Source: Phallusia mammillata
Lineage: Eukaryota
Reading direction: 5' to 3'
Assembly (NCBI GenBank): GCA_965637545.1
Contig: OZ281498.1
Span: 13,640,001 to 13,704,000 of the forward strand
DNA: 64,000 nucleotides
The position numbers were made by a program, and so were the translations under genes. Positions within the stretch are counted from its first letter, which is position 1, and the number at the start of each line of letters is the position of its first letter. Positions 724 through 34,255 of the stretch are shown one piece after another. The notes beneath the pieces were generated by a model that did no database searches, was not told the origin of the DNA, and was given only the letters and a program-made list of their open reading frames with translations.

Positions 724-2079
724 ATGTCAGAACTCCAACAACCGTCTTTGTTACAAGGTCATAACAGCTGTGTAGTTGCGGTAAGAAGTGGCCGGATAGC
801 TTTCAAGCAAGAGTATAGCTTAGTTGTAGCTGCCTCAAGTAGTGACAGCGTTTGTTTGTATTCCCACGACGATCAAGAGAGTAGCCATCGAGGAACATTT
901 AACGTTACATTTGCCTCTTGAAACAGAGTTGCCGCTGTAGTTGGTCGCCGCCTAGTCGTGATTTAACTTGCTATAGGGCTGTGTGGGTGAACCACCATCG
1001 ATCGACGACGGGTCAGCTTCGCACACGTGGCCATTGCTTTGGAATGACGTAAAACCGTTGGAGCAGCTATAAACCAATATCGCATGTGGTGACGACAACT
1101 ATCTGATTGGGGCACCCCGGCAAGCAGGCTGTGTATTGATCCCCGTCTGATTTCAGTCGTTCAAAAACGCATCTTGTCTTAACTTGAATCTCAACATAAG
1201 TTGCTGTTAAAGTAAACAACACCTCCAAGTGATATTGCAAGGACTCCATTAACTGCCACCAGGAACACCAAGTCGTTGCAGTGGCGTTTCTTGGCCTTGT
1301 GGGTGACTCTTGCGGTGAACCTTGGACCCCGTCACAACTTACTGTTGCCCAAGAACGTAAGCGTGCGCCAGTGGCTGCTTCGCAAACGTGCTAACCTGTC
1401 TTTTACCCCTCTTACACCTCGCCCTTGACACCTACACACACACATACCTGTACACACTGCCCTATTTCCAGAGACCCAAACATACACAAGCTTTTACCTT
1501 GGAACTTTTCATACTGCTCTTTACTCTGGTTTCTTCGCCTTGCTACTTCTTTATTCCAAAACAAGGCAACTTGAAACAAGTACATTTGTCATTGCCCCTG
1601 CAACCATTGATCACTTGGCCGTGTTCCCTGTGACTGCTGCTGCGTTTCAACCTTGCACTGCTGCGCTTTGCCTTCATAAATGGAGTGTATGTATTTGTCA
1701 TTGTACTTAATGTACAGTTTTTGTGCTTTTGTGCCAATTTTTTTGAGGTTTGTCAAGTGTGTTTAATGTCGTGTGTGTAGTAATACCTTGTTGTAATACC
1801 TATATGCCACTGTTACGACACCCTAATTCTATAAAGTCATAAGCATATTTAAACATCATATAGTTTTGGAGGCATTTGCACCTATAAAACAATATAGATT
1901 TGAAGCACATTCAGAAAAACATAAAAATGCAGAATAAGGTTACATAGAAAATGTGACTTATACACCTTCAGGTTGCTCTTGTTATATTTGCAGCTCACGG
2001 CGTCGGTTGCGTCACCCCGGTATCAGCCAATGTTCCCTCACTCTCATCTGCGCAATTGGCGGTTGGCCAGTTACCCAGC
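724..2079 (+). CDS. MBNL: Candidate in-frame N-terminal extension of MBNL (~79 aa, three exon segments)
   Basis: 724-780 (ATG...GCG|gtaaga, phase 0), 1263-1356 (ccaccag|...C|gtaagc, phase 0 to 1) and 1994-2079 (atttgcag|, phase 1) splice without stops into the MBNL frame: MSELQQPSLLQGHNSCVVA|EHQVVAVAFLGLVGDSCGEPWTPSQLTVAQEP|[29 protein letters not shown]. They could instead be 5'UTR exons. Confidence 0.55.
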
Positions 2080-5000
2080 ATGCAACAGTTGCCGCAGATT
2101 CGAGATCCCGAGTGGTTAAAAGTTGAGGTAAGTGCTGGATTGACATCACCATCCATCTTTGTCTTTTAACATCTGTAAAGAGCTTCAAGGTATGACAGCA
2201 ACGTGGTTTCTTGGTCCACGATTTGCTGCAAATTTCTGTAGTTTCCAAACTGTGTTACCCACATTTAGCTTTCTAACAGTCGCAGTGGGCTTATCAGTTT
2301 AACTTCGTCGAGGTTTGACATCAAAACCAACCCAGACAGATGAAAGCAACCAAAAAGTGCGATTTGCAACTTTGCACACCGCAATACACAGACTTGATTG
2401 CACAGACCTCCCGCGTAGTTGGTCGATAAGTTGAGTCTTACACACGTGGCAATCGGAAACACCTCGCTACTGTCGTGTGAATGCAATTCAGTGCGAGATT
2501 GAACTTACATAGCTTCTCTTACCCACTTGAGCATGACGCTAATCAACAGTTATTCGCGCCGATCCGGTAAGAAGGCAAAACGAAAATCGGGCCCTCGTGC
2601 GCTGAATGAAAGGCCGTGGGTAGTGTTTAATTCCTTTGTGTGGAATGCGGTGAGGCGGCAACCTGATGACTTGTGCGTTGAACTTGCATTGCGCCCGACT
2701 GTGGTTTATACCACTGTGAATATTTGACTCTTCCGAGAAAACGTTTTTTAACTTCGAAATTGCGTGTATTATACTTAAGTTATACTGAGAAAATAACGTA
2801 ATTGTTTGCGTACGTGAACTGTACTTGGTAAAATGCTGTCCTTGAAGTTTTTTTTGAAATTTCGAATCTCAAAACAGATTTTTTTGTTAATGGTTTTGGG
2901 TACCACTATCATTCATAAAAAACCTCACTTTTTAGCATTTTAGATTTTGACAGTAAACATGTGTGCTGTTTAACAGGTTTGTCGGGAGTTCCAAAGAGGC
3001 GCATGCAAGAGGTCAGCAGACGAATGCAGATATGCCCATCCAGGTAAAAACATCCAGATTGCTCCAGACGGGAAAGTTATCGCCTGCTTCGATGCACTTA
3101 AGGTATTTATAAAGTTAAGGAAAATAAAAAAAGTAAAGTTTCATATTTTCCACTACTTAATTCATGATTTGCTTAAACTACGTTGGATGTAAAGTATTAT
3201 GCTTTTTGTGACCCATATTCATCTTCGAGTTTATTTGAGAAACCGGTTTAAACAACACCAGGTGTTTTTTAATTAATCGTCTTAATACGTTTTTTTGCCA
3301 GTCACTATTAATAATTTATTGTTCGTTGCTGTAACCATGGTGACTTGTTCACGACGTGCATGCAGCAAATTTGTCGGCTACCAATTTGTAGTTTAATATC
3401 CGCGGCTTATCCGAATTTTAGACCATCAACCTAGCCATTATGTAAAGGTAAGTCGGCCAAATGAACGTCAAAAGGTACTTGATGACTAGATGCGCTGTAC
3501 ACACGTCAGCCGTATATTAAGGTTGGCTGATTTTCCTCGAACAGACACGCTTTACCTGAAAATATTCATCCAAAGAACTAGCGATAAAACTTAAACGGTT
3601 ACATTTGTTGGTAGTTTTGACAAATGTTTTACGGATCGGGTTACCACTAAGCTTTTATTATATTTCCCAACTAATACTTACAGTGAATGGAAATTTTCAC
3701 AAGCTGAAAATAACGTGCAATTTGTAACTACTTCGATACACATAGTTGTGGTTGCAACGCGTGACAAGTCAAGCGTGAAACAACGCTGCAGGCGCCACGT
3801 GACTGACCATGAAAGGTTGACGTCGGTACAGCGGACGAAAAGTTTCGAGCGATGGTTACCTGAACTCTACTCAGTGACGTACATGGCCTACCCGTGCCAC
3901 GTCGGTATAAAGCGACCTAGACTAAACAAAACTATTCAGGCGTGACCAGTCTGCTCGGCACAAAAGCGGCGTTGGCAAAAACCTGTCCCGTCTTTGTAAT
4001 TTTAATTCGACGGAACCTGAGCTCGTTAATCTCGCTAACTGATGACCTCGTGTTCAAATATTTGTCCGATTTGGCCGTAAGGCGGCGGACCTTGCTTGTT
4101 GGCGAAAAGAGTCTCGTGGGTTCCTCAGCCACCTCAACGTAAATCGCATGTATCAAGATACTTTAAGTTGTCTTGTTTTAAAACTCGCGACAAGTGTCCT
4201 GTATTTTTTTCTTGCCAGCATGGCATGTGTGTCTGAACAAGACCGTTTATGTGGAACTAAAACAACTATAGCAAGCTAGCAACCTTATGTGCAATAAAAC
4301 AAGCGATACGACTATTATGCGGTTGGTAATACGCTCGATTACCTACTTTGAAGTTTACTACTTGACCTAGTGAAACACGTGGTGTGATTTTAACCAATCG
4401 CTACTGACCGTTCGCGTGAGTCGAGGTCCATGGCTTTTCCCAGCATTTCTTATCGCGGTAGCTCTCTGTCAAGATTACTTTATCTGCGACAAAATTGCCT
4501 CGTCTAAAAGGCAACAACCCGCGTGATTTTTCCTCAGCAAATTTGTTTTCTTAAACTGTTTTTTGATTTCAAAAAGCGGCCTTTTCCATGTTCTACATCT
4601 AACAACTTTTTTGAAACTATTTTCCCTTTATTTATTTACACGTGTTGAACGACACCTATGTGATGTACGTTGCTATGTTCATACACCATTGCGAATTCAG
4701 CAGTGTGTTAGAAGAAATATTGTTCACCTTGCTGTTCACTCACGTGTACCCTCGTTCATTTTTCGTTTCTAATAATTAAATTACATGATCTAAAAACACA
4801 TGGCATTTGTTCACAAATATTTTCCATATCACATTGCGTTTTGTCACAGGAAGATTTCTTGTGTTATCTGTTGGTTGAAGATGGTTACGTGACGCTCACA
4901 AGCTCAAAATAGAAACTGTTAAGGCTACATCCGGATGCCGTTGTTTTATCAATCGCATATAAATTTTACGGCTCCTGTCCACATACGATAATCCCAAAAT

Positions 5001-14000: not shown

Positions 14001-17000
14001 TGGTGCAGCTTGTTCAACTAAGGCTAGCTCGATGCTGTTGGTCTATCCGGGCGAACTTTGCACCTCGGTATTACATCATTTTCAGACAGAAGTGTTTGTT
14101 CAACATAGTGCAGTACAGCCTAAAGCTGCATGCATACAGTTTCCCAGCAGTGTGATCGCCAAATTCGGTAGTTTGGTAATCTCTACCTCCTTCATTACTG
14201 GTTGCCTTTAGTAGATACTTGCCATGTTGATTTAGTTCAGTTTTGCAGTACGCAGTCCGACAAGGCGCAGTTGTACAGTATGATCTATTGTTCTAAGCAA
14301 GGGTAATTAGATAGCCAACCCACGTCACACGGATAAGCTGGGGTTTAACGTTTGTTGTGAGAAAAGGAACTTCTTCCTGCATGAACTACTGCGCTTTCTA
14401 TTTAAAGGAACTTATGTTTATAGCCTTTCTGCTGCTTTCGCGTAACTTAATACGTACTGGGCATTTAGGCAATACAGGTCTCTCCCTCAGTTTATTCAGC
14501 TGCCAGACTTTCGTGTTTGTTATAAGATTATAGTTAATTTAATAATTTATCAACCACTACGGCTTGATTATGTTGTTGCTACCAAACTTCGCGTTGTATA
14601 CTTCCACATTCAGATCCTTCTTCCGTAACTAGCTTCAGACTTTGACAAAGAAGCGAGCTGAGGAAGAAGCTACTGATTGCAGTTTCAATGCTTTTCCAAC
14701 ACTAAAAACTCACGAACTGTCTTATCGGTATACAGCGGTGCTTAAAGCTGTTTGGGGCCTAATGCCCTGCACAAAACCTGTGTTGTACATGTTGCTCTTT
14801 CTTGATTTGTCGCGACTTGTCGTTAATGAGCTAGTATTATTTTAACGTCTTACTTCAAGTGATTTATATCCATTGTTGTATTGCCATTGATTGAAAAATC
14901 TTTTAGCACCGACCTGCCACATTCTGGATTCGCCGCCTAAAAGTCCAAATGAGTTTTGTGAAACAAGTTGCCAAACTAGACCTTTGTAACATCTTGTTGA
15001 AAGGCCGTTATTCGTTGGAAGTTTGATTTAACGATACCGCGTTTTTATGTTTGCATATTTGATCTTACAAGGAACCTGAACCTAAAAGCTGTGGCCTCCC
15101 TGTCAAAGTCAATAGTAACTGCTTACGTGTCATCTTGACTTTCTTGGTTTGGTAACAGCACAGGTACTTAACCGTACACCGTACATTTTGGAAAACTGCA
15201 CCTAAACACCACACAAGAAAATGGCCTTAACTCTGTTTCTGGCTTCTCCTAATGCATCTCGCTAACAACTATTTTAAACTGGCGCTTAGAACTGTACAAG
15301 GCAATGTGAATATAAAAGCAACGGATCATTGAATTCGCTTCGTTCGTTGTTGGGTTAGGGAATCTCGCTGGGTTTTTGTTTGAACGGACAATTTGACTCT
15401 CACTGCGCAGTGAGGACTCTTGAACGCGCTTCTTCGACGCCACTTTCACTGGGAGTGCACTGAAACCCGAACTACTCCAAACGTGATGAGCTCACAAGCG
15501 ATCCACTGCTCATCGCTTTTCTATTAAGTTACCATGGTGACAAACTTGACAAATGCCATTTTACTGACAATTAATAAAAGGTGACATCTTTGGTCATTTC
15601 AAAGTTGGATGTTTGCTGAAATCTTGCTAGGTAATTTTATTGTAATCTTTCTGTTACTAAACGAACTCAGGTACCAATGGTTTTTAAACGTCGTGCTAAT
15701 TATAAATTCTTGACCAAGTAAAGCGGCATCGCAGACACAAGTGAAAATAAATGAACCTTGAAGGTTGGAAAAAAGTTATGTTTAAGTGATAATCCGTAGA
15801 CAACAACATTTTCCTATATTTTGAGATGCCAATCGAAAGTCGTTTTAGCCAGTTTAAACAAACGGTTCCGTTTGCACGCCCTCTTGGGGTTCACTGGTCT
15901 GAGGTATGGTAATTGCTTGGTCACACCTAACGCTAATGGTTTTTGCACAGACCCATTACAAGTCAACACCACAGTGCAAATTAGTTAAAGCACGCCTGCT
16001 CTAAAGCTCTTACATCGTGTTTCCACTCTATTTGGAACCAAATTTTATTGCATACCGAAATGTAGTTTGGTGGTCTCAAATTTATATCAGAGGTTGACAT
16101 GATTTTGTTTTTTGAGTACCACGTCTTTCAATCTGAGGTTATACTGTCACAGACAGGGTTGTTTATTGTTTTGTCATTTTGGTAAATGTGTTTAAGAGAT
16201 CAAAAGTTATTTGGTGTGATTGTTACTTGCGAAGGACAATGCTTGCTCTAGGAATTTGTGCAGAAAAGTGATTTGAAGTTAATCCGGAGTAAATTGATCG
16301 TTTAGCTATTTTTAGTCTGGCCATTTTGTATGCATCAAACTTGTTTCAATACGAACAGTACATGGCCTTTCTGCAAAATTTATTGGTATTTGAATATTTC
16401 TTAAAGCAGCAACATTTCATTTATTTGTTTTCAGTTGACACCCAACTGCTAGACATAGGCTTTCGCTCACATCGCGCAATAATATAATCTCGCTGATCGT
16501 ATCATTAATTGACCGCTCTCCAAAGCTCGATTTTGCGACTCAATCTTGGATTGGTGCTGTTCATACAGGGTCGCTGCAACCGCGAGTCCTGCAAGTATCT
16601 GCATCCCACCTATCAACTGAAACAACAGCTCGAGATCACCGGGCGTCAAACTCTTCTGCAGAACCGAGCCATGCTCCAGCAAATGTTGCCTTTACAACCC
16701 AGCGTTATGCCTGCTATTCCCCAAGGAGGACTTATCGGATACGAGGTAAGACTACTTTTTATAAATTTGATTATGCGTGGTTGATATTGTGCATAAAAGT
16801 GTAGTTCGGCTAAGTATCCATGAGCAATAAAATGGACTTGGTTGTATTGTAAGTCAACTATCTTCAAGAATATAACTTAGTTCGTTTTTTACATAACATG
16901 GTGCTTGATCTAATTTGTTTTGTATTTTATGTTTTCCCCGTACATATATGCAATTCAAATTGTAATTTTGATTAAGAAGCTGGCAAAAATCCACGTAAAA

Positions 17001-20000
17001 AAACGTTAGGATCCTTACGCTTAATCCAATGCTTTGTTGCACCCGGCAAATTAATAAGCTGTATACTGGTAATTGACATAATCATCAGTATTACGTGACT
17101 TTCGACTTTCCATGCGCTAGGCGATGACGTCAATAGCCGACCATAAATTTTACGTTCAAACATGGGCGTTTCTACAGTTCACTGTCAAGCCATTGTTTGC
17201 CGCTAATTTTGTTGACTTACAATCAACGGTTTTCGCTCCCAACTTACCCATTCTGTTTGCTACATTCCCTTGTGGCTCAGACTTAGTCATTAGTTAATTT
17301 TTAACCTGATATGTGAGTTTTGAGTAGGGTTCTACCACCTTTTAATGCGCTCATTATATGTGTTTCGTTAATTGCAAAAATTAAAATTTATGAGCGATAT
17401 ATAAAAGTTGGCTGCACGCAGTCGACCATGTTTTTTTTACAACAACCAAAAAAACTATAAATATTTTTCTTGGAGTTTTTGACCAAAAAGGTTAGTTTTT
17501 GGTACTTCTTTTGGTCTGTAAAAGTATCTGTTGTTTAAAATGATAAAAAATGTGTGCGCAGTTGTTTGTATGAAGCGGTATAAAACTAATTCGTAACATG
17601 TGATTTTTTATTTGCGAAGCAATATCGCATTTTAACCGCCACTGATATATTGCGCAGACAATATAATTACATCAGAAATACAATTTGCATCCCACGCTTG
17701 CTTAAAATCTTTGAAGTCGCTCCTAAAACAGCGGAGAAGTGATTTATCGAAGCTTCATGATTTCGCTGCTGTTGACATATGGTGCATATAAATACGTCAG
17801 ACCGTATCGCACTTAGCTGCCAACAAACGCATTTTCCATGCGCTGGAAAACCGCAGGCTTTATGTTCCATTATATAGGCCTCAGCCAACCAGCTCATACG
17901 CTTTGCTGTGTGCAGCTGCTCAACACCAACAGCGGGATACGAAATTAATTTGCTCCAGTTTCTTTCGTTTGTACTGATCTGCGCCTAACCGACATTTTGT
18001 TGATTTTGCTGTCGGAGAAATATGTGTGTGTTTGTGTGACAAAACATCATGTTTTTACGCACCATCCGAAATCCTAACCCACTCCTTGTGTCCGCTCGCT
18101 AACCTGCCTTGCTTAACGACTTTCACCCCTCAGCCCTAATTTGACCCCGTGTTTATTGATGTGCGCAGCAACTTACCGGCGGCAACGCTCAGCAAATGGT
18201 CAGCAGCCTGCATACGAATCCGTTGTATAGCCCTAACGTCGCTGCATCCGCTGGCACAGCTGCTTACAGTGTGTTGCCTTCAGGTATTGTGTTTATCATC
18301 TGCTGCAAACAGCTACACTTAATTTTGTTTGTTGTGCTTTAAACGGTAAATGTGTAAAAAATACTCTGATAAAGGTGCTAAATTTACACGTTCCTTTGTA
18401 AACGTTTCATGAGTTTCAGTAGTTTAGAAATTCCCCCGTTTTAAAGGCATATTTTGCACGTTCATCCAATAAGTTGTATTGCTTTATAATTGTTTTTTCC
18501 GACACTGATGCGTCGAAACTGTCTTCATCCAACTATAAAAACATTATTTACCAGACTTGGCGTCCATCAACCAGCATTACATGACGTATTATCCCATCGC
18601 AGCATCACCTGGCCACCAGTTGGCCCTCGCGCAGCACCCTGTATCGCCTCAAGTGGCCGCTATGATTCCAGCCTCTGGAGCTTTACGTGCTGACAAACTT
18701 GAGGTAAGAAACAGCGGAGTAATATTTGAGATTAGGTGATCTTATGTCTTGTTCATTGATAATAAAATTAAACACATTTATATACGGGTCAATCTTTGAA
18801 ATATACTATTTGCCAAAACAACAAATTATTTCCAGTTGTGGTAACTGTGTTTATGGCCTTAGAACTAAGATTTGCCCTAAATTTCTGATGGGGGTGAAGG
18901 GTGTATTGCTGTCTTTATTTGAGTTTTCGTTATGGTGGAAATGAGTCGAACGTGATAATAACCTTAGCGCATGACTCAACCAAAACAATTCAGTTTGAAT
19001 CCATCAGCTTGACAGTGCAAAGCGTGATTGGGTTTCCTGTTGTCTACCACTCTGTGAAGTACTCTCCCTAGTCGGTTAGTTTTGGCCGCGGCGATTTCGG
19101 GCGCAAACCCAACCTCAAGGTGATTTGCTTTCGCCAGCCGCCGCATTCCTAAACACCATGATGTTTTCGCTTCACCTCCCGTCGCCTTTTAAAGCGTCTC
19201 TAGTTTCCAGTTCCTCGGTAGTTTCTCGTTAAGGGCGGTGGTGGGTTTAGACCCGGTCTGTTGCGCTTACCTCGACTAACGTGCCAACATCGGTCATCAC
19301 GCTGCACGCCCTAATGCTTGTGACAAGCGAGATTCTTGCCCCGAGTTGGCGGCAACACCTGAACTATCTCACCCCGTCACGGCAAGTTTCCGTTGTACAG
19401 GCGACACCCAACTTGTTCCATTTTCGACGCACGTTTATCAATAAAAACTGTGCGCAATTTTTATTGATTTCACAGCGCTTACCGCCTCATTTTAATATTA
19501 CCTCAAAACATAACTTTTATTTTCAACGCAGGAGGTACGTAATCTTGGGGAACGCTTGTACACTGAAAAACACCATAGATTGCAGTTTTAGCAAAGTATA
19601 TCGCATGATATTTAAATACAACTGCTAATAAAAAAATACAATCAATCTAATTGACAAATAAGCCTTGTCCATATATTGCGTTGAGATCTATTGTCCTATA
19701 ATTCACAGACAAATGTGATGAGGTTGCTATCAGTTCTTATTCGTAGTTTAAAAAGTTAGGGGATGTAGTGTGTAATAAGTAGGACATTGAATTTTTTGCC
19801 CCACTTGATATTGTCGTGTATTTAATGCATCAAACAATTGCTTGCTTAAAAAGACAATGTTTATTATTTCTCAGGTTTGTCGCGACTTCCAGCGTGGTAA
19901 CTGCACTCGTGGCGAATTTGAGTGTCGCTACTGCCACCCACCGGACAGATCGATGATTGACGTCACAGACAATACAGTGACGGTTTGTATGGATTACATA

Positions 20001-23000
20001 AAGGGGCGTTGTACCAGAGAGAAGTGCAAGTACTTTCACCCACCAGCTCACTTACAGGTTTGTAGTGTAAAATCGTTTTGAAAAATGCGTTTGTTTTGGT
20101 TTGAAAAATAACCGGTTGTGGCACGTTTTCATGTTTGTTGAAACTGCTTTTAGCCAAAACACATAAAACGCTTTTGTTTGACTGTATTCTCACGAAAATT
20201 TTGCACCGAAAGGCAGTTGGTTTATTGGCACAATGTTGCCAAACAAAGGCAAATAAGAAAAAAACGGTAAACAGTATTACAGTCTTGATTTAATCGGTCA
20301 TGCATTTACGATTTGCCTTGATCCAGTTGTTTCATATTCTCAATACCTTTTCAGGCGCTAATTTCAAATATCTTTATCATCACTTTTGTATGTAATTTTT
20401 GCGACAATTTTAACACGGTGGACGTAAAATCATGTTTAGCGATCACCTACGATTTTTCTCAAAATCAACAATGAACTCGTAAGGTTAAGTTGTAAATCTG
20501 CAATCAATTTAACAATTACTTATATCACCTGGATTAATCAGTACACCCCTTGATTGGCCGACCAGTCGATTTATTCCTGCTCTAATTACTTGCAGGCCAA
20601 AATCCGGGCAGCACAGAATCCGGCAGCAGCGTTTCTGCCACCGCTTTCACACGGCACTCTCGCTACTTCTGCTCAACCCGCTGTCATGGTAGGTTTCGCC
20701 CACCCTGCCACACCTGCCACCATTACTGCACAATTGTATATTGCATGTTCTGTATCATGATATCGAAAAATGAGTCGTGTGAACTATTAATTTGAAGTTT
20801 TTGCATTCTACTACATTACTAACATAGACGTGTAAATCATTTAGTCTTTGCTTGAACATGTAAAATGTCATAATTTATACACCTGTAATTTGGTGAATGT
20901 CTAAGCAACGGTGGTAGGAGAATTTTTAACATGCATGGTGTTTTTAAAGTTGTGGGTTTGTGGCATGGTGTCCAGGTTGACATGAAGAAATAAGCTATGT
21001 CCAAATCGCCGTTTATTTAATTGTCCAATGATGTTTTTCAATTCCATGAAGTTTGAGAATCGGTATCAAAAACCATTTCTTTACTACCATGCCCAGTAAC
21101 GAGTGTTTGGTTAAAACGAACACATTAGATGTCACCTTGCATTTTTTGTAATTTCTTAACATGAAATTAGTTTCTGTTGGTTGCATTGCTTGAATGAATG
21201 GTGTTTTGCTTTCCAGCCTATACACGCTTTACTAGCTTCCCACCCTAGTGCAAGATTGTGTGAGCAATCGTAACCTGAACCCTATCTGTAATCTATTTTT
21301 GTGAAGTTTTATGTTTAGTTTTTCTGGCGATTAATTGCGATTTTTTGTGTTATTTCCCTTTCCCCTCTGTTTTGCCCCAATTCTTTGTACTTTCTCTTGC
21401 TCCCTTTGACCCTACACCCAACCCTGCTTGCTGATTGCCTGCCCCGCTATGCGATCCCCATCCGCAATGACCACAGGCCCCAAAAAGAGTTTTAACCTTG
21501 GAAGACGTGGTAATCTTCTTTTTTTCATCGAATAAAACGTTTTTTATTAATTAATAAACATATTGTTATAGGTCATAGACAAAATGTTAGTTATCGCCAT
21601 ATATATTAGGGCTTTTCTTTCGGCTTGATTTTTTGCTCGATTTCCCCCCATTTGCATGGCTCCTCGTACTTGTTCCTCTAACAATGCATGGCCAAATACT
21701 ATTCGGATGAATGATTTCATCACATCACGTGGTGATCGTGGTAGCATGCTCAGACATTAGAAAGTGACTAACTGCCCCGCGTCGCTGCCTGGTGGTTTAG
21801 CGAAATCTAAATATTGTGTATTGTCGATTGATCGTTGTTGGGAGGGTTGGTTCGTAAAACAAATGAAGTTTTCGGATGACCGGTAGGACGGGGCTTTGTA
21901 CAAGTCATCCACCCACCTTGTACCTTTTTTCCGAAATATCCCATTCCCGCTTGCAGATGACCAATGGATCAGCTCTGGGTCAGCCTCCGTTGAAGAGACA
22001 TGCGCTCGAGTCATCCATTATCACTTCGTCGGCATCGGGACTTGGCTCATCTCCTGGTTTGGCTCCGTCTCCGAGCGGTTCACAGAGTGCCGCAACTCTT
22101 GCCGCGCTTTACAGCTACAATAACGCTGCCTTGCAGGGTCTTGTCACTCTTCCACATCAAACCCTGCCCGCTGCGAACCCGACTGCATATTACCAACAGG
22201 GTACGTATATATTTGCTAAATAGCGTATAAATTTATGTATGTCAGTCTATGGGGCGTATATTTCATAACTAACTGTTTAAGCTAAATATGGGTCCCCTTC
22301 CGTGAAGGGGGCACATATTGTTTTTGTCCGTATTTCTTTTTTCTGTCCAACCCTGGTTTGTAACGCTCGTTTGGTCAAGAAAGAGTGCTTCAAATTTGGA
22401 CAGATGTTAGTTATTAATCGGAATTTGATCCTCCTGAAGTTTAACCCCGATTGACCCAGCGGTTCACCCACAGGCCCCCAAAACATATTTTTTTAAACAC
22501 TGGATTGTAACGCTCGTTTGGTCCAGAAAGAGTGCTATAAATTTACACAAATGTTAGCAATTGATCCAAATTTAATCCTCCTGAAGTTTGACTCCAAATG
22601 ACCCAGTGGTTCACCCACAGCCTCCCAAAACGTAAATTTTTAAATCGGCTTTACTGAGTAAAGTACATAATCTAGGGGTTTCATGCTGTGTTGGTTGGGG
22701 CAGTGTAAGGTATTCTAAAGAATTTTCCAACTTTTTATTGGATTCACCCCTAAAACCCCAAAATGATCGGTTTTAGTTTTAGGCCAGAAATACAAGCCCT
22801 AGTGTGCTGAAATGTTTAACATTGGGTTACTCGTTTGTTATTTAAAATATCAGCCAAATCTATCAAGTGGTTATCCGTAGGTCTACACCCCCAAATTTGT
22901 GTTAAAACGTTCACTAAATCTTCTGATGGAGTTTAACACTATATCACTCTGGTCCCAGTGGAGTTATTCACTGATTTGCGGGTAATACGCACAGCGATAG

Positions 23001-25292
23001 CTTCGCTTTTGTTTCGCCCCATGTTTACAATGGAGATAGTGATTACGCTGACGGAAACGAAACCGTGAAATTGCGGAATTTTTTTTGTGTGTTTTGCGCT
23101 TTGTTTTCACCCGATAAAGATTTTGTCGTTTATAACCTGCGATGGGATACGGTGTAGTCGATTGATACATTTTATACACAAGCTTGCTTGAGTAGTTGAT
23201 ATGCAATGGCAAAAAATAGCAAAAAGTGCAGATTTTCTTAGAATCTAAGCATAACCGGAACATTTGTTTACCGTTTGTGGGGACCCATTCGTTTTTGCTT
23301 GCACAAACAATCATATGTGTAGATCAAATTATGTGTATAGTAAATTGGTAAATATGATATACGTAAAATATATATTATGGAAGTATATTAGAAAGCCACT
23401 TTCTAGTTTTTTTCATAGCTTGCAATAAAGTTTTCGACAAAAAAAAGAAAAATTGTGACAGTGGGAATTACAGAGTGTAGTTGTGCCATACCACTACAAT
23501 CAGTTTTCTAATTTGCTAAGTTCGATTTTTAGCTGCCGGCGTTCCCATGCTTCAGCTTTATGGCAATACAGGAGGAACACTTGGTCCAGGAAGTGCAGCA
23601 GCCGCCGCGCAAAGCGCCCAGCTCGCCGCTTTTAACCTTCCTTCCACAAGTGCAAGCACCCCCAGCGCCTCCGCAACTTCTTATGCTTTCCTTAATGGAC
23701 AGAGCAGCCAGGTATATTAATTTTTATTTTTAATTAAAATAATGGTTTCTGTACTGTGTTTGTGTTGTTTTTTGTGGTTGTGTCTTGTTTTATCAATGCT
23801 TGTTTGTTTTTTTCGTTGTTGAATTAAATCATGTTTCTTGTTTGTACATGTTACTCAAACAGTGCAGTTTGTACAATCCGAAACATTTAAAACATTGTTT
23901 CTTTTCACCTTCAATGATAATATCTGCGCCCAACTTGACGTTTTTTCGTATGATAGACATGGTTTGTTTTTCTCTCCGTCTCGTTGAAATATCGTCATGT
24001 ATAAGGGATTGCAGTCTAAATCGTAAAAGCTGCACTGTTTGCTGTATTCTTGATTCCAACTTTTGCTTGCCGGCACTTGACCGACTAACCCAACACTCAC
24101 GCTTCAACGCTTTCCATGTTTTGCCCGCATCCGTATAGTTTTGCTCCGAATTCTCGGTGAAAACAGCCTCGTCGTCCCAGCAACCATCTCAACAACAGCA
24201 ACAACACCAGACTTCCAGTGGCCTCACCACGATGACTGTTTGCAGAGATTTTCAATCGGGGAAATGCGTGCGGCCGTACTGCCGCTTCGTGCATGTGCGG
24301 GAAGGTACAGCTGCCATCGAATGCAAGCGGCCAACTGTGTGCGACATAAACCACCGGCGGCATTGGCACATACAGTGTTTTCTAATTGCGCATTTCTTAA
24401 TTAGGCGAGTGGTTGTGGTGTGACGTACGCGTGTTGTGCGCATGATCAGCGCAATAAGCAATCTCAGCAGTGGCGTATGTTTTTTGACAATTCATGGTGC
24501 AGAATTGTCCACCAGGTGGCTACTATTTAACATAAAGCATCAAAAATCATAAAGCAAACATACCCTGCTGGTCTGTTTATGTATGTTATTGTGAAATTCA
24601 TGCACTCATAATTTGCGTCTGTCATTGCGATCATCTGTGTTAAAACATTTACTACATTCTATCATTGCAGGTTTTACTATCGTTCTTCAGTAATTCGTGT
24701 GCTCTTTGTAATTCTATGCACGGCGCGAATGCGAATTGCGTTTGCGAGCAATGTTTGAAATTGGTGATTTTAAAAAAACAATCACAAAACTTTCCTCCAC
24801 AGGTTGAAATACGACAACGCACATTTTGCTCCACATTTTTTATAGCGCTGATTTTTGGCTGAAACAAAGCCATTGACATACGAAACTGCCGATTGTTAAT
24901 TGTTTCCACGTTTTTCAGATTATGTTGAAATAAAAGACGACAAAGTAACGGTGTGCCGCAACGCTTTGCAAGGTGAGTTATATTGACAAAATGTTTTTCC
25001 TGTGAAACTATTACTTTGTATACAGCTGTGTTAAACGTGTAATATTCAATTATGCCCCGCAGGTCGCTGTGCACGACTCCAATGCAAGTTTTATCACTTG
25101 CCAGGCTCACCTTCTTCCCCGTCTGACGGTTCACTTCTCGACGCTCAACCCTTAGCTGCATTTGCCCCGCTTGACACCAGCGCGTCATCTATCAACGGTC
25201 TCGGGCATCCCGGTCTGATGCTTTCTGGTGGAATTCTTCCAACGATTCAACACTCCTATCCTTCAACACTCACCGACGCTCAAGGCGTCTGA
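2080..25292 (+). CDS. MBNL: Muscleblind-like RNA-binding protein with six CCCH zinc fingers (spliced; ~590 aa from ATG 2080)
   Basis: Exons 2080-2127, 2977-3102, 16569-16745, 18169-18283, 18555-18703, 19875-20057, 20596-20688, [21477-21509], 21957-22200, 23533-23711, 24139-24304, 24919-24972, 25063-25292; all GT-AG with matching phases. Translation: [16 protein letters not shown]|[42 protein letters not shown]|[13 protein letters not shown]... and RADKLE|[61 protein letters not shown]|AKIRAAQ. These are the MBNL ZF1/2 and ZF3/4 tandems; PLKRHALE resembles the MBNL NLS. Confidence 0.95.
21319..21476 (+). promoter_or_regulatory. AG-free ~157-nt zone with distant branchpoint candidate and YGCY cluster upstream of the MBNL micro-exon
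   Basis: No AG between 21319 and 21474; TTAAT at 21331-21335; long pyrimidine tract; tgct/tgct/tgcc/tgcc/cgct at ~21425-21448. Confidence 0.65.
21477..21509 (+). CDS. MBNL: 33-nt in-frame MBNL cassette micro-exon ([11 protein letters not shown])
   Basis: ccacag|GCC CCA AAA AGA GTT TTA ACC TTG GAA GAC GTG|gtaatc; phase 0/0; sits between the ...QPAVM exon and the PLKRHALE exon, the position of vertebrate MBNL1 NLS-containing alternative exon 5. Confidence 0.65.
22285..23408 (-). mobile_element. Second copy of the same modular element, inverted, in an MBNL intron
   Basis: ATGGGTCCCC 22288-22297 / GGGGACCCAT 23279-23288; hairpin CCCCTTC-CGT-GAAGGGG 22294-22310 next to the shared ggacaaaaacaatatgtg motif (reverse); ~147-bp tandem units (anchors 22364, 22511) followed by degraded copies; ctagtt end at 23403-23408. 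Confidence 0.7.
24139..25292 (+). CDS. MBNL: MBNL exons encoding a third tandem CCCH pair (ZF5/ZF6) and C-terminal tail
   Basis: 24139-24304, 24919-24972, 25063-25292 give [23 protein letters not shown]|[18 protein letters not shown]|[14 protein letters not shown]...AQGV*; both fingers are C-x7-C-x4-C-x3-H. Confidence 0.85.
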
Positions 25293-28044
25293 AATGACCG
25301 ACCTGATACGAGTTCCAAGTTGTTTTTGTTTGATTTTCCGCGCATGATTGAAGCCGTGTTTAAGTTCCTTTCTCATCTGGCGATTTAGCCACTGTTTGTT
25401 GCACTATGTAGCTGAATATATCAAACACAGGCCTTCTAAGTATCTTCTGTGTTGTGTGTTTTTGATTCATGTGAAAGCATTGGAAGTGCAAAGCGACCGC
25501 AAATTTTCTGACCTTCACCGGGTGCCCATTTTCGTGTCCAGTTTCTATTCCAAACAATCCAGTGTGCTATTTTTGGTTTTGTGATAACGACACTGTCTGC
25601 ATCAGATAAAGCGACGGTTAAGGTTACATTCATTCAGCCGCTCCTTGTGGCGAATTCAAACCTTTAGCCCCAGCGGGCATGTTTAGCATTTTGCTGTATC
25701 TGCATTTCTGAGGTCCATGAGGCCAAAAACGCACAGTTTGCTGCGTTTTTCTAGGTTACCTATACACATCGTGTTTTACCGAGTTTATGTCCACGCTATT
25801 TTAACGAAAAACATTTTATCGTGTTAGCGTTGAGGTATAACCACTTTCTTTATCTTCGCTTATACTCTTTGTACTGTGACCCCTATTCTGTTGTGTACAG
25901 CGGCCTTGTGTAGTTAGTATCGGCCTGTGTGCAGTTCCATAACTTGTATATATCCTGATTTGTTTCGTGTGACCGCTTATATGCGATCGTGATGTTCCAC
26001 CGCCTTACTGATACGTAATCCAACAGCTCTTCAATGGCGGCTCGGAAGACCGAACGTCAACTCGCAAAGTTCCATGATTTTAAAATGTTCATTGATCAAG
26101 TCCTTGTTTTTGGCGCTTTTGGTTCCATGACTTCATGTTTTCTTTTTTTTTTCTTTTCGGCAAGGCGTTACGACATCCTGAATTTGCATTGTGCCTGCAA
26201 GGTTATGTGCTCCTGTTTATTTGAACGTAGTGAACAACCTACGTTTAATCTGGTTAATATTTCAGACCTATATAATAATGTACAATCTTACGGCTCTAAT
26301 AGTACCTTGTGCGATGGTTTCTTTTATTATGGTGTATATGACAGTATCTTGTGTTTTCGTTACTTTTCGCATTGTTTGCAGGATTTTAAATTTTGCAGCC
26401 CTAGCGTTTGGGGCATGGACTTAGTGCATTATATCACAATAGTTGCGTTGACATTTTCCGCGTTCCCCGTGGCAACAAACAAACCAGTCTTGTCGAATAT
26501 TTGTTCGCCAGTGTTATATCGCCAGCACATAGCGCCCTAGGCAGCAGCTGCAGCAGCAATACTCGCGGAATCCTTATTTATTTTCGCTTGATTCCATTGT
26601 GGAAGTAACCATACCGTTTTTTTTCCACGCTAACAAATCCAGTAAAAGTGCAACACTAAATCTAATTTTCAACGTTTGGTGCGCCTACGACGTGCTGGTC
26701 CAACGTCTGTTGTCGCATGATACTGTAAAATATGAAAAAAACTTGTCCCAGTTTAGTGCCCGTTTCATGGTTTTTAGTCGGATGCCCCCGCATACGGTCA
26801 TTCGCTTTTCGCTCGAGATACCAAGTATCTCCGCACGCTGCTGCCCGAAAGCTTACCCCGTCGTGCCTTACATGTAGGCTCGTTTAATATCAAAAACAAC
26901 CAGCGTATATTCCTAATCACCGCCATGTTGCTCTCACGCCTTTGCCCGTTTTAACGGCTCGGCTCATTTGTACATAAATGCAGAATTGGTGTTTGTATTT
27001 TCCTAACCCGCGTACAATGTTTTGTCGCTACCGGCGAAGTTTCTTCTTTCCCCTGTTTGGATACCAGTAGCAAAATTCGTTTATTAGGTTTGTCCAACCC
27101 TACAGCAGGACCATCTTCAGCGACGAAATACCGAACCACTAAACGTATTTTTTCGGAAAAAATAAGTCTTGTTAATACCTTCGTCAAAGGTTTTTTCGTT
27201 TTTAATTAAACTTTAAGATGGTCCTGTAATTTACGCACCGAATCAATGTAGTTGAGTAACTCTGCACTCCCATCATTTCTGCGCGCTACAAAATCATGCT
27301 TAAACACGGCCTAGTCGTGTAGCACGATAACGTAGAGCTCCGCAAAACTTAGTTGAAGCACGTCCGTGTTTCCTATTGCTTCGCGCGATCCCCCACACTG
27401 AGGGTCTGAAAGACGACAAACTTAGCTAATTGTTGCAAACTTGTGATTGCACCCTTGTACAGTAGCAATATCTGGACATAAATCGTTCAACGATGTGAGT
27501 CTAGAATTTAAGTCATTTGTTCTTCTTCGATTTTAAGGGCTTTTAACGTTTTAAGGCAGGATTTTTAATCTTTACCCGGTTTTAACTTCCTGTTTCCATT
27601 GTGTACGTTACTGTTTAAAGTTTTACAAGTTTATCTCTGTCGGATGTTTTATGAGAAGACGTTTGGTTCTAATTTTTCCATGCTAGCTTGTAATTTCTAA
27701 TTTGTGAACAATTAACACTTTTAAAGTTAAACATTATTCTATTCTTTTTATTGGACACGTTTTGAATCATTGTAATTGTGTTGGGTAATTCTTGTTTTGT
27801 TTCGCACATACCAATACTGTTACCATTACATTACTATTACAAGAAATGATTAACTTCCGTGATTTGTACAGATAGCTAATACTAAAGTACCATGGCCATT
27901 TTGACAGTTCGTTTCATGAAACAGATCAATGTTTGATTATATGTAAACTTTTTAGCAGGAAAAGGAAACAAAAACACAAATGCCTATTATCAGTTTCTTA
28001 TTACTTTCTAAGACCGTTGTTAATATTCCATCACTTGACAGAAG

Positions 28045-28050
28045 TTTATT
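28045..28050 (-). terminator. Candidate AATAAA poly(A) signal for anosmin
   Basis: tttatt on the + strand 85 nt past the anosmin stop. Confidence 0.4.
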
Positions 28051-28103
28051 ATAATATCGAAAACAAAATAGTGACTGTGTGTCATGGTCATGCCAGGTTA
28101 CAA

Positions 28104-28121
28104 AATAAACAACACAATAAA
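28104..28121 (+). terminator. Candidate AATAAA signals (28104-28109, 28116-28121) ending a long MBNL 3'UTR
   Basis: Two AATAAA hexamers follow a long U-rich 3'UTR-like tract (27500-27900). Confidence 0.3.
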
Positions 28122-28134
28122 TATGCTGATGTTT

Positions 28135-31100
28135 CTAAGGAAATTGTATAATGGACTCTGATCCGTTTCTTCGATCTGCAAACACAGGAAGTATGTGCGC
28201 AAAGTAATTTGAACTTTCCTCAACATCTGATATTTTCCAGTACGGTACGGCCTAAAAAATCGTATAGGTGGTTGCTTTAGAACAATTTGGTTAGAACGGA
28301 TTTTGACAATAATTTATGTGGCCGAAGTTATTTGCAAAAACTTATCAAACTCTTCACCGTTCACTAAATTTAGTGATGCACCTGATATTTATTATCCCTG
28401 TTTAAAATACGTCTTACGGGTACGGGTAGTTTTTTTGGGGGGGAGGTTCTAACGCTTAAATCCTCATCAGTTTTGTTCTGATTGTCAAAACAAAAATGCC
28501 AGAGAAAAAAATTTCCTTGTTTAAATAACAGCAACACATTCTTACTTTGACGGGAATAGTTGTCCAAGTAATGTTTGTTTCCTTTTTTCCTACGGTGTAA
28601 TAAACAAAATACCCCAGTAGTTGTTGATTAGTAGCAATCTCGGCAAACTCGGGATTCTTCCAACTTAATAAAGTTGACGATGAGGACTTGAGTTGAGTTT
28701 GTCCAACTTTCCGAGGTTTGCTTGAAACTTTTCCTGGAGCAAAAGAATAGTATTAAGTTTTGCAACCACAAATATAGTATGTTATAAAACTGGCCATAAT
28801 TCATTTACTTCATTGTCCGGTTGAAAGTAACATGACGCACACGTTAAAAAGTACACTAGGCCTGTAAGAAGCGTGATACCAAATTAAGCTGGTCTCCCGA
28901 GCATCTTCATGCGGCATTACGTAAGTTAGAAAAAGCCGTATATTTAGCAAACCTTTGAGAGGTGTAGGTGGCGCAAACAGCACGAACTCCTATTTAAAAC
29001 GAAATATGTCTAAAATGCTGACGGGTAGGGCTATTTGGGTTGGAGTAAGGTAAAATTATTAAAAGTTAATAAAACTTGAAAACTTTGTTTCTAATGCACT
29101 TTTTTTAAAAACTTACTTTTCAACCTATTTTAGCTGCTCAAGTGATAATGATATTTAGCTCTTTGCGCCTTTGTCAAAATTTAGCTAAAGGTGCGGCTGA
29201 CAGTAGCTCTACCAAGAATTTTCTTTCAAACAAAAAGATTGCACACGACATATCATTTACCCACCTATTTGACACGAGTCATTTTGTGTTATAGCGAGTA
29301 TTGGCTCGAGTACGCCACAAGTTGGAGTAGCAAATGACACAACAGATCTTCCAGACCATTGGTTGCGCAGTGAACCATACCAGGCTTCCACCGATATTTT
29401 ATATCTACATCCCATTTGCAGATCACTTAACAAAAATCGAACATTCTGTGGACAAAAGGTGCGTTACGAAACAAATATAATACATATAGCGAACCTGTTT
29501 CACATAAGTTACGAAAACCATGAATACATTTTGCTCTGTGTGTTCTGTACAATCATAAGATATATTATATTGAAAAACGTTTGACCATGATATCACTGGT
29601 TTATGACTATTTGGAAAGAAAGTTTATCACACCAATCACTTAACAGCTCATCTTTTAACACATATAATAAGCTTGAATGCCATGGACAACGAAGGGTTGA
29701 ACTACATTGAGGTCAAGTCAGACTTATTGTGAGCATTACGCTTTCAGACGTTACCTGTCCATTTGAGACAAAAATTAAACAAACCTAACAAATACAAATT
29801 TGAAATGAAAAACAAACACGAGCGTAATGGGATTGTCGCTTGTAACTACGTTAAAAAGCTTGCGCGAGATTAATTGCTTTATACCGTGATATATTGGGTA
29901 TTTCAGTGGGTATTTCTAAGTAAATTCACTTACACTTGTGAGGTCTTGCTCTGTGGTCTTAGCAACTGAGCCATCCAGACACGACCGACGCTCCCACTCG
30001 ACCATAAATCGGACTATGCTCTCTGGCGCCTCTACACAAGTAAGTTGTATGACTTTCAGCGTTCAGTTGAGTTACAGGGGCAATTCCATAATATGGTTGC
30101 ACCTTTTTTCAAATATCACTGCTGAAATAAACCTTGTCAATATAAAAAGGTTACCTGTGAATCTGAAATGCCAGGAAACATTTACATCAACCACGTTTTC
30201 GCGAATAACAAACGGCGTTTCTATTTTCAAGTTGATAATTTCTTCACTTGGTCTTAAATGTGGAAATGTCACTAAAACAGATCATTTTTATTTTTGCTTT
30301 GTTCCCATACTTAATAAACGTTCGTACCTGTTATGACTGTTGCAGTGCTAAACAAGGTACCATTATTCCAGCCGCTAGATGCCACTACAGAGACGCTGTA
30401 ACGGGCAAAAAGTCGCAATTTCTTAATCCACAAAGTCCATTGAGTGCTCTTGTATATTCGCATTTTTGGAGCAATTTTGTAGAAACTTCTCTTTACTGAG
30501 TGACGAATGTGGTTTCCGTTTTTGCCAATCTGATGCCATGTCACATGAAATCCTGTAAAAATTTCACAACAGCTTGTTTATCTAAGCTTGTAGAATGATG
30601 GTATGCTTGGATTTCAATCCGTGACAAACGTCGAATAGCACGAACGCTCAACAAAATTTGCTGAACTGTTATTTCCCGCATATATTAAAATAAATCTCCA
30701 TTAGCTTAAAAAGCTCTGCTGGATTAGAAATTTCTCAGCTTAAAAACTTTTGCAACTTGAAAGAAGCCGAGTTTTTTAATGAATAATAAATGCATATCGA
30801 ATGTGTACGACTGTCATTTTTTTCTAACTTAAAGTTTAAATGATGCTGAGCAACCCCTGCTGTGTGGGCTGAATGAAGAAAATCACTCAGACAGGTAATC
30901 GTTAAGTGTTGGACATTGACTTCCTGCTTGGCGGCGATCACGGCGCATCTGCTGCCTTACAAGCAGCGAAAATGAATAGAATAACTTGCGTCGACGGATC
31001 ATGCAGGAATTTCTGAGCGTCACGGTTGACATTTACGAATGAATGAGGTTAGTGATAGATCGTTGTTGAAACTGGTGCAACGCCAATCAAGCAAATACTT

Positions 31101-33144: not shown

Positions 33145-34255
33145 ATTTCCAAAGTTTTTATTCGGCTCACAGGTTTTGAATTCACTAAAGACTACTGATT
33201 TTAAAGCTGCCAAGTGTGTTAGAAGCTTCGAAATAAAAACATGAAAGTTTTACGATCGAACGATCGATTGCCTTTATGGAATCCTCAAAGGAATAAGTTA
33301 ATCTCGTTATCCATGGCGCTTGTCTCTTATGGAGGGCAATTAGGCAGATCAATTAATGAAAGCGGGACCCAATAATCAAAAGAGTTGTAAATCAATGCCA
33401 CCCAGATAGAGGCAAGGAAAAGAAGTTCTGTACATAAATTTGTCTTCAGTATTAGTTGCTTTCATACACTTAACTTTCGTGAAAAACAGTTTGTGATTGT
33501 TTGTAAAATATATTATCCTAAATTTCCTCTTATTATCCTAAAAATATCGTAGCTCTTCTCTCAAATCACCACTTACTAGACATTGGAATCCATTACTCAA
33601 ACTGTAAAATTTATTTACGAAACTCCGATGCTGCATCGTGTAGTAGTGGTAGAGTTCAAGGCGACATTTAAACACACCAAACTGTTGGCCACAGACAAAA
33701 CAAAAGCAAGCAAGACTGATGCAAAGCGAAAAACACATATGCTGCAGAAGATATTTCATTAACTACAAAAAATCGCAACTACTACTTCAATGAAAAGCAG
33801 CCGGGCCGGGTTAGTAGGGGAATATACGTAGAATAATAATAATGTGGAATTTGTACAGAGGGCTACCACATAGAGGCTTTGATCGCTGCACTCGCGTGGC
33901 GTAATAATACTGCAAAGTCCGTAATGATGAAAACGGCTGGTCAGATGTGTTTACTGTATCATGACAACAGCCCCGAATGGTTGTTAGTCGCGTGAGGCGT
34001 TAGTGTGGTGAGAATACATGCATGCATGCGGATTGGTTATAGAGGGGGTGGACGATTGCATAAAAGGCAACACTGCTTCTTGAAAACAAAGGGACCAAGA
34101 ACTTTAAGTCTGCGCAAATGTTGGGACACGGAGTTAAGGAAGCTGAAGCAAGGTTATTGGTTAGTTCTATTTTCTACAAAAATGTTAGGGGGTAAAGCGG
34201 ATCGCACTATGGTGATGTGAAATTATAAACTGGTGTGAAAGGCAAAAATTATTCA

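Follow-up and report, generated by a model that had tools for sequence, protein, structure and literature searches.

The DNA analysed here (the window) is a stretch of 64,000 nt from Phallusia mammillata (assembly GCA_965637545.1, contig OZ281498.1, positions 13,640,001-13,704,000) that contains no N. It carries a muscleblind gene on the + strand, in which an earlier sequence-only reading had noticed a third tandem pair of CCCH zinc fingers (ZF5 and ZF6). To trace the gene, isoform X1 of the Ciona intestinalis zinc finger protein (P0160, 603 aa) was used as a tblastn query. All parts of this protein were located in order along the window, and the exons encoding ZF5 and ZF6 are the last three of the 12-13 exons of the gene. 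As expected of a muscleblind, two N-terminal tandem CCCH pairs follow LEV boxes (RD/KWL..LEV ahead of ZF1) and show the spacings x7-x6-x3 and x7-x4-x3. The gene model is colinear over all exons with Ciona X1 (66% identity) and with the muscleblind-like protein 1 of Styela clava (58%). The sequence is thus closer to Ciona than to Styela, but distinct from that of C. intestinalis. The gene is an orthologue of the annotated ascidian muscleblind, in which the additional fingers are a regular component.

The three terminal exons (24139-24304, 24919-24972 and 25063-25292, + strand) have GT-AG borders, matching phases and an unbroken frame. Joined together, they form 450 nt with a single frame of 149 residues, in which a Gln-rich stretch is followed by ZF5, a linker of 15 residues and ZF6, the latter being interrupted by the second intron after CRNALQ. 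The acceptor of the ZF5 exon lies in phase 0 and continues ...FLNGQSSQ from the exon at 23533-23711. The spacing in ZF5 is C-x7-C-x4-C-x3-H. The sequence-only reading had given the same exons, borders and frame, and had pointed to the unusual spacing of ZF5, which is real and common to every orthologue compared. Its central claim, that an extra MBNL-type CCCH pair belongs to the muscleblind gene, also held, with a frame that is continuous upstream and colinear with the six-finger proteins of Ciona and Styela. The 55-residue ZF5/6 module scored 42.1 bits on Pfam PF22628 (cut-off 27), as two stretches, compared with 85.8 bits for ZF3/4 of the same gene. To judge from such scores, the match of the module is far beyond chance.

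We consider it very likely that these three exons form the 3' end of an ascidian muscleblind gene and encode an ancient, alternatively spliced third tandem zinc finger pair, most likely a third RNA-binding unit. The third pair of muscleblinds outside the jawed vertebrates is here named TZF3, a term coined for this study.

Fold and predicted RNA binding of the third pair

A structure prediction had been among the checks proposed in the sequence-only reading, and it returned an MBNL fold. The AlphaFold2 model of the module, built on 26 orthologues, had a mean predicted local distance difference test score (pLDDT) of 87. When it was compared with the PDB by Foldseek, the nine top matches were all tandem fingers of MBNL1 or MBNL2. 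The model superimposed on ZF3/4 of MBNL1 (3d2q, and 3d2s with RNA bound) with a template modelling (TM) score of 0.83 and a root-mean-square deviation (rmsd) of 1.3-1.4 Å. Across the human MBNL1 pairs ZF3/4 and ZF1/2 (3d2q, 3d2s, 3d2n, 5u6h), TM scores of 0.80-0.83, rmsd values of 1.3-1.6 Å and sequence identities of 40-43% were obtained, and other, non-MBNL CCCH pairs reached a TM score of at most 0.43. A phmmer search of the PDB gave the same picture, with matches to MBNL2 ZF3/4 (3e-12), MBNL1 ZF3/4 (9e-11) and MBNL1 ZF1/2 (7e-9), followed by CPSF4 at 0.012; the significant sequence matches were MBNL pairs only. The human MBNL1 pairs share with the module the CCCH ligands, a VTVC strand leading into the second finger and, in that finger, the pattern GRC...CK[YF]xH. 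With its 15-residue linker, within the 14-16 residues taken for a compact unit of two CCCH fingers, and its predicted MBNL fold, the module has the make-up of such a unit.

The residues on which zinc and RNA binding would depend are conserved as well. All eight zinc ligands are invariant across the 26 orthologues. An arginine is found two residues after the second cysteine (Cys2+2) in 24 of the 26 for ZF5 and in 25 for ZF6, and the same fractions apply to an aromatic residue two positions after the third cysteine (Cys3+2). Both fingers of P. mammillata have R and F at these positions. Because the module retains the predicted MBNL fold, its zinc ligands, and arginine and aromatic residues at these positions, the third pair is likely an RNA-binding unit, and the model suggests that it would most likely bind RNA in the manner of MBNL. 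TZF3 would then fold as a compact two-finger MBNL unit and act as a third RNA-binding module, which might raise the valency of the protein or widen the spacing or range of the GC-containing sites that it bridges. The sequence-only reading had proposed that the extra module could alter YGCY avidity or specificity, which remains a conjecture.

ZF5 departs from the first fingers of the human MBNL1 pairs in several respects. The spacing of ZF1 and ZF3 in human MBNL1 is x7-x6-x3, whereas ZF5 has x7-x4-x3; the LEV box is represented by T[LM][PT]V; and the linker has 15 residues instead of 14 or 16. The typical x7-x6-x3 of a first finger is thus not found in ZF5. A first finger with x7-x4-x3 is, however, present in all 24 metazoan third pairs compared and also in ZF3 of a coral and a sea star, and since these two ZF3 share it, the spacing of ZF5 does not exclude membership of the MBNL type.

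Several points weigh against RNA binding by the third pair. Neither the x6 spacing nor the LEV box of ZF1 and ZF3 is present in ZF5 (which has TMTV, against a consensus of TLPV), so that the surface of this finger may differ, and the residue preceding its Cys2 is poorly conserved. No published RNA-binding measurement for any TZF3 was found in the literature searched. The functional reading of the Cys2+2 and Cys3+2 positions depends on human MBNL1 Arg195, Phe202, Arg231 and Tyr236, which we take to be their equivalents and to contact a GC step. In work attributed to Teplova and Patel, of 2008, these four residues reportedly stack on the GC step.

The same traits of ZF5, its short x4 spacing, the absent LEV box and the variable residue ahead of Cys2, would suit a TZF3 that is conserved but does not primarily bind RNA, and that serves protein contacts, self-association or localisation, or has a target unrelated to YGCY. 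Such a role would also fit with the replacement of the ZF5 aromatic residue by N or Q in two molluscs, and with the observation that two pairs suffice in jawed vertebrates and a single pair in the classic isoforms of fly and worm. YGCY motifs, sought as a sign of autoregulation, showed no enrichment or cluster near the ZF5 exon (18.7 per kb in the upstream intron and 9.8 in the downstream intron, compared with 15.4 in the gene). We nevertheless regard a non-RNA role as unlikely. The predicted fold superimposes on an RNA-bound MBNL1 pair, nearly all orthologues (24-25 of 26) retain the arginine and the aromatic residue in both fingers, and every significant PDB match is an RNA-binding MBNL pair.

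Exon use and the switch between six and four fingers

In Ciona, the gene likewise ends in three exons (142 nt, 54 nt and the terminal one), with the same phases and GT-AG borders. Its order of exons, three finger pairs and terminal-exon phases are mirrored in the P. mammillata gene, as judged from Ciona X1 and X2 (XP_018671400.1, 603 aa; XP_009862110.1, 592 aa) and NP_001071913.1; the overall identity is 66%, and neither the Gln-rich stretch ahead of ZF5 nor the tail that follows ZF6 is conserved. The ZF5/6 module is 81% identical to its Ciona orthologue. Over 59 codons of the third pair, a nonsynonymous rate (dN) of 0.147 and a synonymous rate (dS) of 1.66 were obtained (dN/dS 0.088), and the third pair is under purifying selection. 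At the DNA level, blastn of window positions 1-28000 against the Ciona locus gave just eight short islands. Six of these are exons of the gene, including the ZF5 exon (24235-24311, 81%) and the linker exon (24903-24961, 88%), and the remaining two are the micro-exon region and a 26-nt intronic element.

In public protein records of Ciona and Styela, all six fingers are part of one product. The Ciona record NP_001071913.1/BAE93303.1 (474 aa) unites ZF3/4 with ZF5/6, and its accession types suggest that it rests on complementary DNA (cDNA). Because the Ciona structure is shared, conservation is limited to the exons, the pair is under purifying selection and joined products exist in relatives, we regard the three exons as real and as used in the muscleblind gene.

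A point on the other side is that the junctions in P. mammillata rest on splice signals, frame and orthology. It could be argued that the exons form a separate downstream transcript or are unused relics, with the muscleblind messenger RNA (mRNA) ending upstream, as the four-finger isoforms known in relatives might suggest. This is very improbable. The acceptor at 24139 is in phase with the upstream exon, the fingers form part of one product in the Ciona and Styela models and in the Ciona NP_ record, the low dN/dS and the exon-limited Ciona conservation speak for coding use, and the AT skew of the + strand continues to about 28 kb. Moreover, the four-finger isoform itself ends in the exons 24919-24972 and 25063 onward.

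The way in which four fingers would arise can be read from the exon lengths. Skipping of the 166-nt ZF5 exon, with 23711 joined to 24919, shifts the frame to ATT ATG TTG AAA TAA, that is IMLK and a stop at 24931-24933. The predicted skip product ends GQSSQ-IMLK and has four fingers. Annotated four-finger isoforms of Ciona (X5 and X3; P0155, P0152) end in ...NGQSQ-IMLK and that of Styela (X4; P0161) in ...NGQSQ-ILLK, and thus the predicted C-terminus equals that of Ciona exactly and is one residue off that of Styela. This agreement indicates that the third pair is an alternatively spliced module. Inclusion of the ZF5 exon would yield the six-finger protein and skipping the four-finger protein with the IMLK-stop end, and both isoforms are probably made in P. 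mammillata, to go by its exon structure and its relatives. The 3' end of the four-finger isoform would still consist of the exons 24919-24972 and 25063 onward, and the skip-frame stop lies 39 nt ahead of the last exon junction. Stops within the usual distance of the 50-55-nt rule escape nonsense-mediated decay, and the IMLK mRNA should therefore do so.

The third pair is isoform-specific in coral, fly and hagfish as well. Coral and fly use alternative terminal exons or in-frame skipping, whereas the ascidians use a frameshifting skip. One hagfish isoform diverges directly after ZF5, and the hagfish and fly isoforms part at the point of a conserved intron, described below. In the fly Eurosta solidaginis, mbl isoform X19 (P0177) shows an in-frame skip of the ZF5 exon that keeps ZF6 alone (...PFVPVS-YDKVEVCDQRVAVCRDH...), and its product would have an unpaired finger.

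Age, distribution and description of the third pair

The distribution of the module was surveyed exhaustively in 1.84 billion representative proteins, of which 643 matched at E<=0.001 (best 5e-44). Many of these have three matched stretches, the best one being C-terminal, and all top-match proteins whose names were looked up were muscleblind or muscleblind-like plant or algal proteins; ZC3H10, which the sequence-only reading had suggested for comparison, was not among these names. Carriers identified by name are, for example, Ciona, Styela, the hemichordate Glandiceps, the corals Stylophora and Pocillopora, the sponge Sycon, the hagfish Myxine and all five classes of echinoderms. Further carriers are the nematodes Trichinella and Trichuris, an oyster and a snail, a tick, a shrimp and a barnacle, Manduca, and the flies Eurosta, Drosophila simulans and Aedes. 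When the hagfish pair served as the query of a region search, the list grew by lamprey (Petromyzon MBNL1 X6/X15), amphioxus, Ptychodera and Saccoglossus, and by spiders, a damselfly and flatworms. A word-indexed search with the Ciona third pair returned two candidates and was uninformative on distribution.

Maximum-likelihood analysis of 66 tandem pairs united the third pairs, 24 metazoan and two algal, in one clade (97/92) that was separate from pairs 1 and 2. Its metazoan members come from sponge, coral, molluscs, arthropods, nematodes, echinoderms, hemichordates, tunicates and hagfish. The P. mammillata pair grouped with those of Ciona and Styela (100/97), and then with that of hagfish. Hidden Markov models (HMMs) for the three pair types, trained without the P. 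mammillata sequence, classed its gene as TZF1-TZF2-TZF3 (108, 118 and 101 bits), with TZF3 at the C-terminus. The same layout was assigned to 83 of the 347 proteins collected, and the models also placed a third pair in amphioxus, lamprey and flatworms.

The clade has a signature of its own, TLPVCRDFxxGxCxRPxC[RK][YF][VA]H ... EDxVEVxDxKVTVCRDAxxGxCxRxxCKYYH. The signature, the C-terminal place and the clade are shared by third pairs of Myxine glutinosa MBNL1 X5, Petromyzon marinus MBNL1 X6, Branchiostoma, Glandiceps and Stylophora, and by those of Rhipicephalus, the Eurosta and Drosophila simulans mbl isoforms and Sycon. The P. mammillata pair likewise is C-terminal, has x7-x4-x3 in both fingers, falls in the clade and carries the signature, with TMTV instead of TLPV.

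Gene structure provides a further marker. A phase-1 intron lies four codons after the ZF5 histidine in P. mammillata (GAA G/gt..ag/AT), and it is also present in Ciona and in the coral Stylophora (AAA GAC A/gt..ag/AA). The coral gene furthermore shares the phase-0 intron in ZF2. The single clade across phyla, the three-pair layout and the intron shared with the coral indicate that the third pair is ancestral. On this comparative evidence we take TZF3 to be an ancient orthologous module, ancestral to animals and kept in cyclostomes, and no recent duplicate of pair 1 or 2. The sequence-only reading had left open whether the architecture was ancestral or lineage-specific; the first part stands, with third pairs from sponge to lamprey, and the second does not. 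Of the groups it had named for comparison, tunicates, amphioxus and echinoderms proved to have the third pair, as did many other animals.

The introns within the second fingers were also considered. The ZF6-internal intron is in phase 1, within a Gly codon, and the ZF2 intron is in phase 0, before a Gly codon; the former is found in P. mammillata and Ciona, whereas the coral has none. An identity of the two intron positions as a sign of duplication was ruled out, as the phases are 1 nt apart and the coral lacks the ZF6 intron. A tunicate-specific duplication of ZF1/2 or ZF3/4, which might be suggested by a 15-residue linker equal in length to the ZF1/2 linker of this gene and by a ZF6 intron one nucleotide off the ZF2 position, is extremely improbable in view of the separate clade of third pairs from sponge to hagfish (97/92), the occurrence of TZF3 in 83 three-pair proteins across phyla, the post-ZF5 intron of the coral, and a ZF6 intron that is absent from the coral and differs in phase from that of ZF2.

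The third pair appears to have been lost in jawed vertebrates, as all seven of the MBNLs sampled from them were classed by the HMMs as TZF1-TZF2 only, in keeping with the four fingers given for human MBNLs in the literature. It counts against this loss that it rests on annotated isoforms and literature rather than on a genome-wide search.

Three tandem CCCH pairs also occur in streptophyte algae and land plants, in proteins of about 400 residues. Records were found from Closterium (P0010), Mesostigma (P0009), Marchantia ('muscleblind', P0269) and rice (C3H28, P0298), together with P0025, P0030 and P0270. In these proteins, annotated as muscleblind or zinc finger CCCH domain-containing protein 28 (Marchantia, Closterium, Mesostigma, Selaginella, Ginkgo, rice), it is the animal TZF3 model that gives the C-terminal pair its highest score, and the two algal third pairs fall within the animal TZF3 clade (97/92), which may reflect shared descent or transfer. 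Overall identity is 30-35%, and pairs 1 and 2 have no one-to-one assignment. The Closterium protein, used as a query, was covered to 92-94% by six-finger animal muscleblinds and to 49% by jawed-vertebrate MBNLs. No paper on three-pair muscleblind-like proteins of streptophytes was found in the literature searched. A different six-finger layout occurs in a second muscleblind paralogue of lampreys (Lethenteron P0045; Lampetra and Petromyzon P0194-P0199). It is TZF1-TZF1-TZF2, with a duplicated first pair and no third-type pair, and exists alongside the paralogue that keeps TZF3.

Six-finger muscleblinds are annotated in RefSeq and UniProt for dozens of species, from sponge to lamprey, and no description of a third pair or of a six-finger muscleblind was found in the full-text literature searched. 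The third pair is thus of a database-annotated kind that is under-described in the literature. The sequence-only reading had conceded that prior documentation of six-finger muscleblinds would remove the novelty, though not the call; at the level of databases such documentation exists, and the novelty falls. The reading was right that characterised muscleblinds have two or four fingers. A 2025 review gives four fingers for the human MBNLs, Hale 2018 one pair for the fly and worm proteins or their major isoforms, and Solana 2016 one or two pairs for planarian muscleblinds. Irion 2012 reports one and two tandem motifs, and a 959-residue fly isoform with 'no other recognizable domains'. Oddo et al. 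2016 (PMC5041496) expressed the Ciona 'Zinc-finger X1' under the name CiMBL and remarked only that homologues differ in 'the number of ZnFs'. The protein now named Ciona X1 (XP_018671400.1, 603 residues) has six fingers, and the finger count of the CiMBL construct is unstated in that paper.

The main additions made here are the frameshifting exon-skip switch between six and four fingers and the recognition of the third pair as a distinct orthologous module, from sponge to lamprey. Public proteomes hold a conserved, splice-switched third pair, with its own signature and intron, in most animal phyla and in cyclostomes, whereas the literature knows one or two pairs. If the third pair has its own RNA preference, this would bear on the transfer of human MBNL results to invertebrate models and on the reading of the Ciona protein in cross-species splicing assays. 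The third pair also offers a natural three-module scaffold comparable to engineered MBNL proteins.

A broader reading can be put forward tentatively, at less than even probability. The ancestral muscleblind would have been TZF1-TZF2-TZF3, with a third module that has its own non-YGCY specificity or role, is switched by splicing and was lost in jawed vertebrates. The layout could even predate animals, since streptophyte plants share it. If this were true, mechanistic work on human MBNL1-3, fly MblA-D and worm MBL-1 would have studied a truncated version of the ancestral protein.

Gene model and neighbouring features

The gene model of P. mammillata consists of 12 exons and a 30-nt micro-exon, encodes 616 residues and has GT-AG borders at all introns; the start codon is provisional. 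A scan for CCCH motifs placed ZF1 at 2980-3039, the second half of ZF2 at 16569-16604 and ZF3/ZF4 at 19878-20039, all on the + strand. The features are listed in Table 1.

Table 1. Coding exons of the P. mammillata muscleblind gene in the window
Feature	Position	Strand	Basis
First coding exon recognised	1993..2127	+	Ciona X1 residues 3-48, 63% identity (tblastn); GT donor; 5' limit provisional
ZF1 and first half of ZF2; ends in CFDALK, followed by a phase-0 intron	2977..3102	+	PF22628 36.9 bits; coral intron at same position
Second half of ZF2 and start of linker region	16569..16745	+	PF22628 45.6 bits
Linker exon, pair 1 to pair 2	18169..18283	+	Ciona X1 residues 147-187 (tblastn); AG/GT; frame
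Linker exon ending ...RADKLE, LEV box ahead of ZF3	18555..18703	+	tblastn to Ciona X1; frame
ZF3 and ZF4 (pair 2)	19875..20057	+	94% identity to Ciona; PF22628 85.8 bits
Exon AKIRAAQNP...	20596..20688	+	tblastn to Ciona X1; frame
In-frame cassette micro-exon, 30 nt	21477..21506	+	AG/GT flanks; matches APKRILALED of Ciona X1; in Ciona-conserved island 21473-21514
Ser/Pro/Ala-rich exon	21957..22200	+	62% identity to Ciona residues 340-419; frame
Exon ending ...FLNGQSSQ, shared donor for six- and four-finger isoforms	23533..23711	+	tblastn; frame; isoform ends
ZF5 cassette exon, 166 nt: Gln-rich, ZF5 at 24241-24294, VRE	24139..24304	+	AG/GT; Ciona counterpart 142 nt, also 1 mod 3
54-nt exon: inter-finger linker, first half of ZF6 from 24954	24919..24972	+	AG/GT; 88% DNA identity to Ciona; Ciona exon of equal length
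Terminal coding exon: second half of ZF6 to 25097, poorly conserved tail, TGA 25290-25292	25063..25292	+	AG acceptor; frame

Two further matches to a raw CCCH regular expression were rejected. That at 25038-25097 (+) is ZF6 read across its intron and no separate finger, and the CCCH-like match at 26477-26424 (−) is due to chance.

The 26-nt element conserved with Ciona lies at 14651-14676 (+), in the 13-kb intron that splits ZF2, and is 96% identical to a stretch of the corresponding Ciona intron (locus L002, 11041-11066). It is the sole non-exonic blastn island besides the micro-exon region.

Downstream of the terminal exon, the earliest hexamers resembling poly(A) signals are at 27205 and 28104. 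The AT skew is steadily negative (-0.08 to -0.15) from position 1 to about 28 kb, then zero, and then positive (about 28000-34000). This turn fits with a + strand unit that ends near AATAAA at 28104/28116 and a − strand gene beyond it. The − strand gene would be the collagen IV gene noted in the first reading of the sequence.

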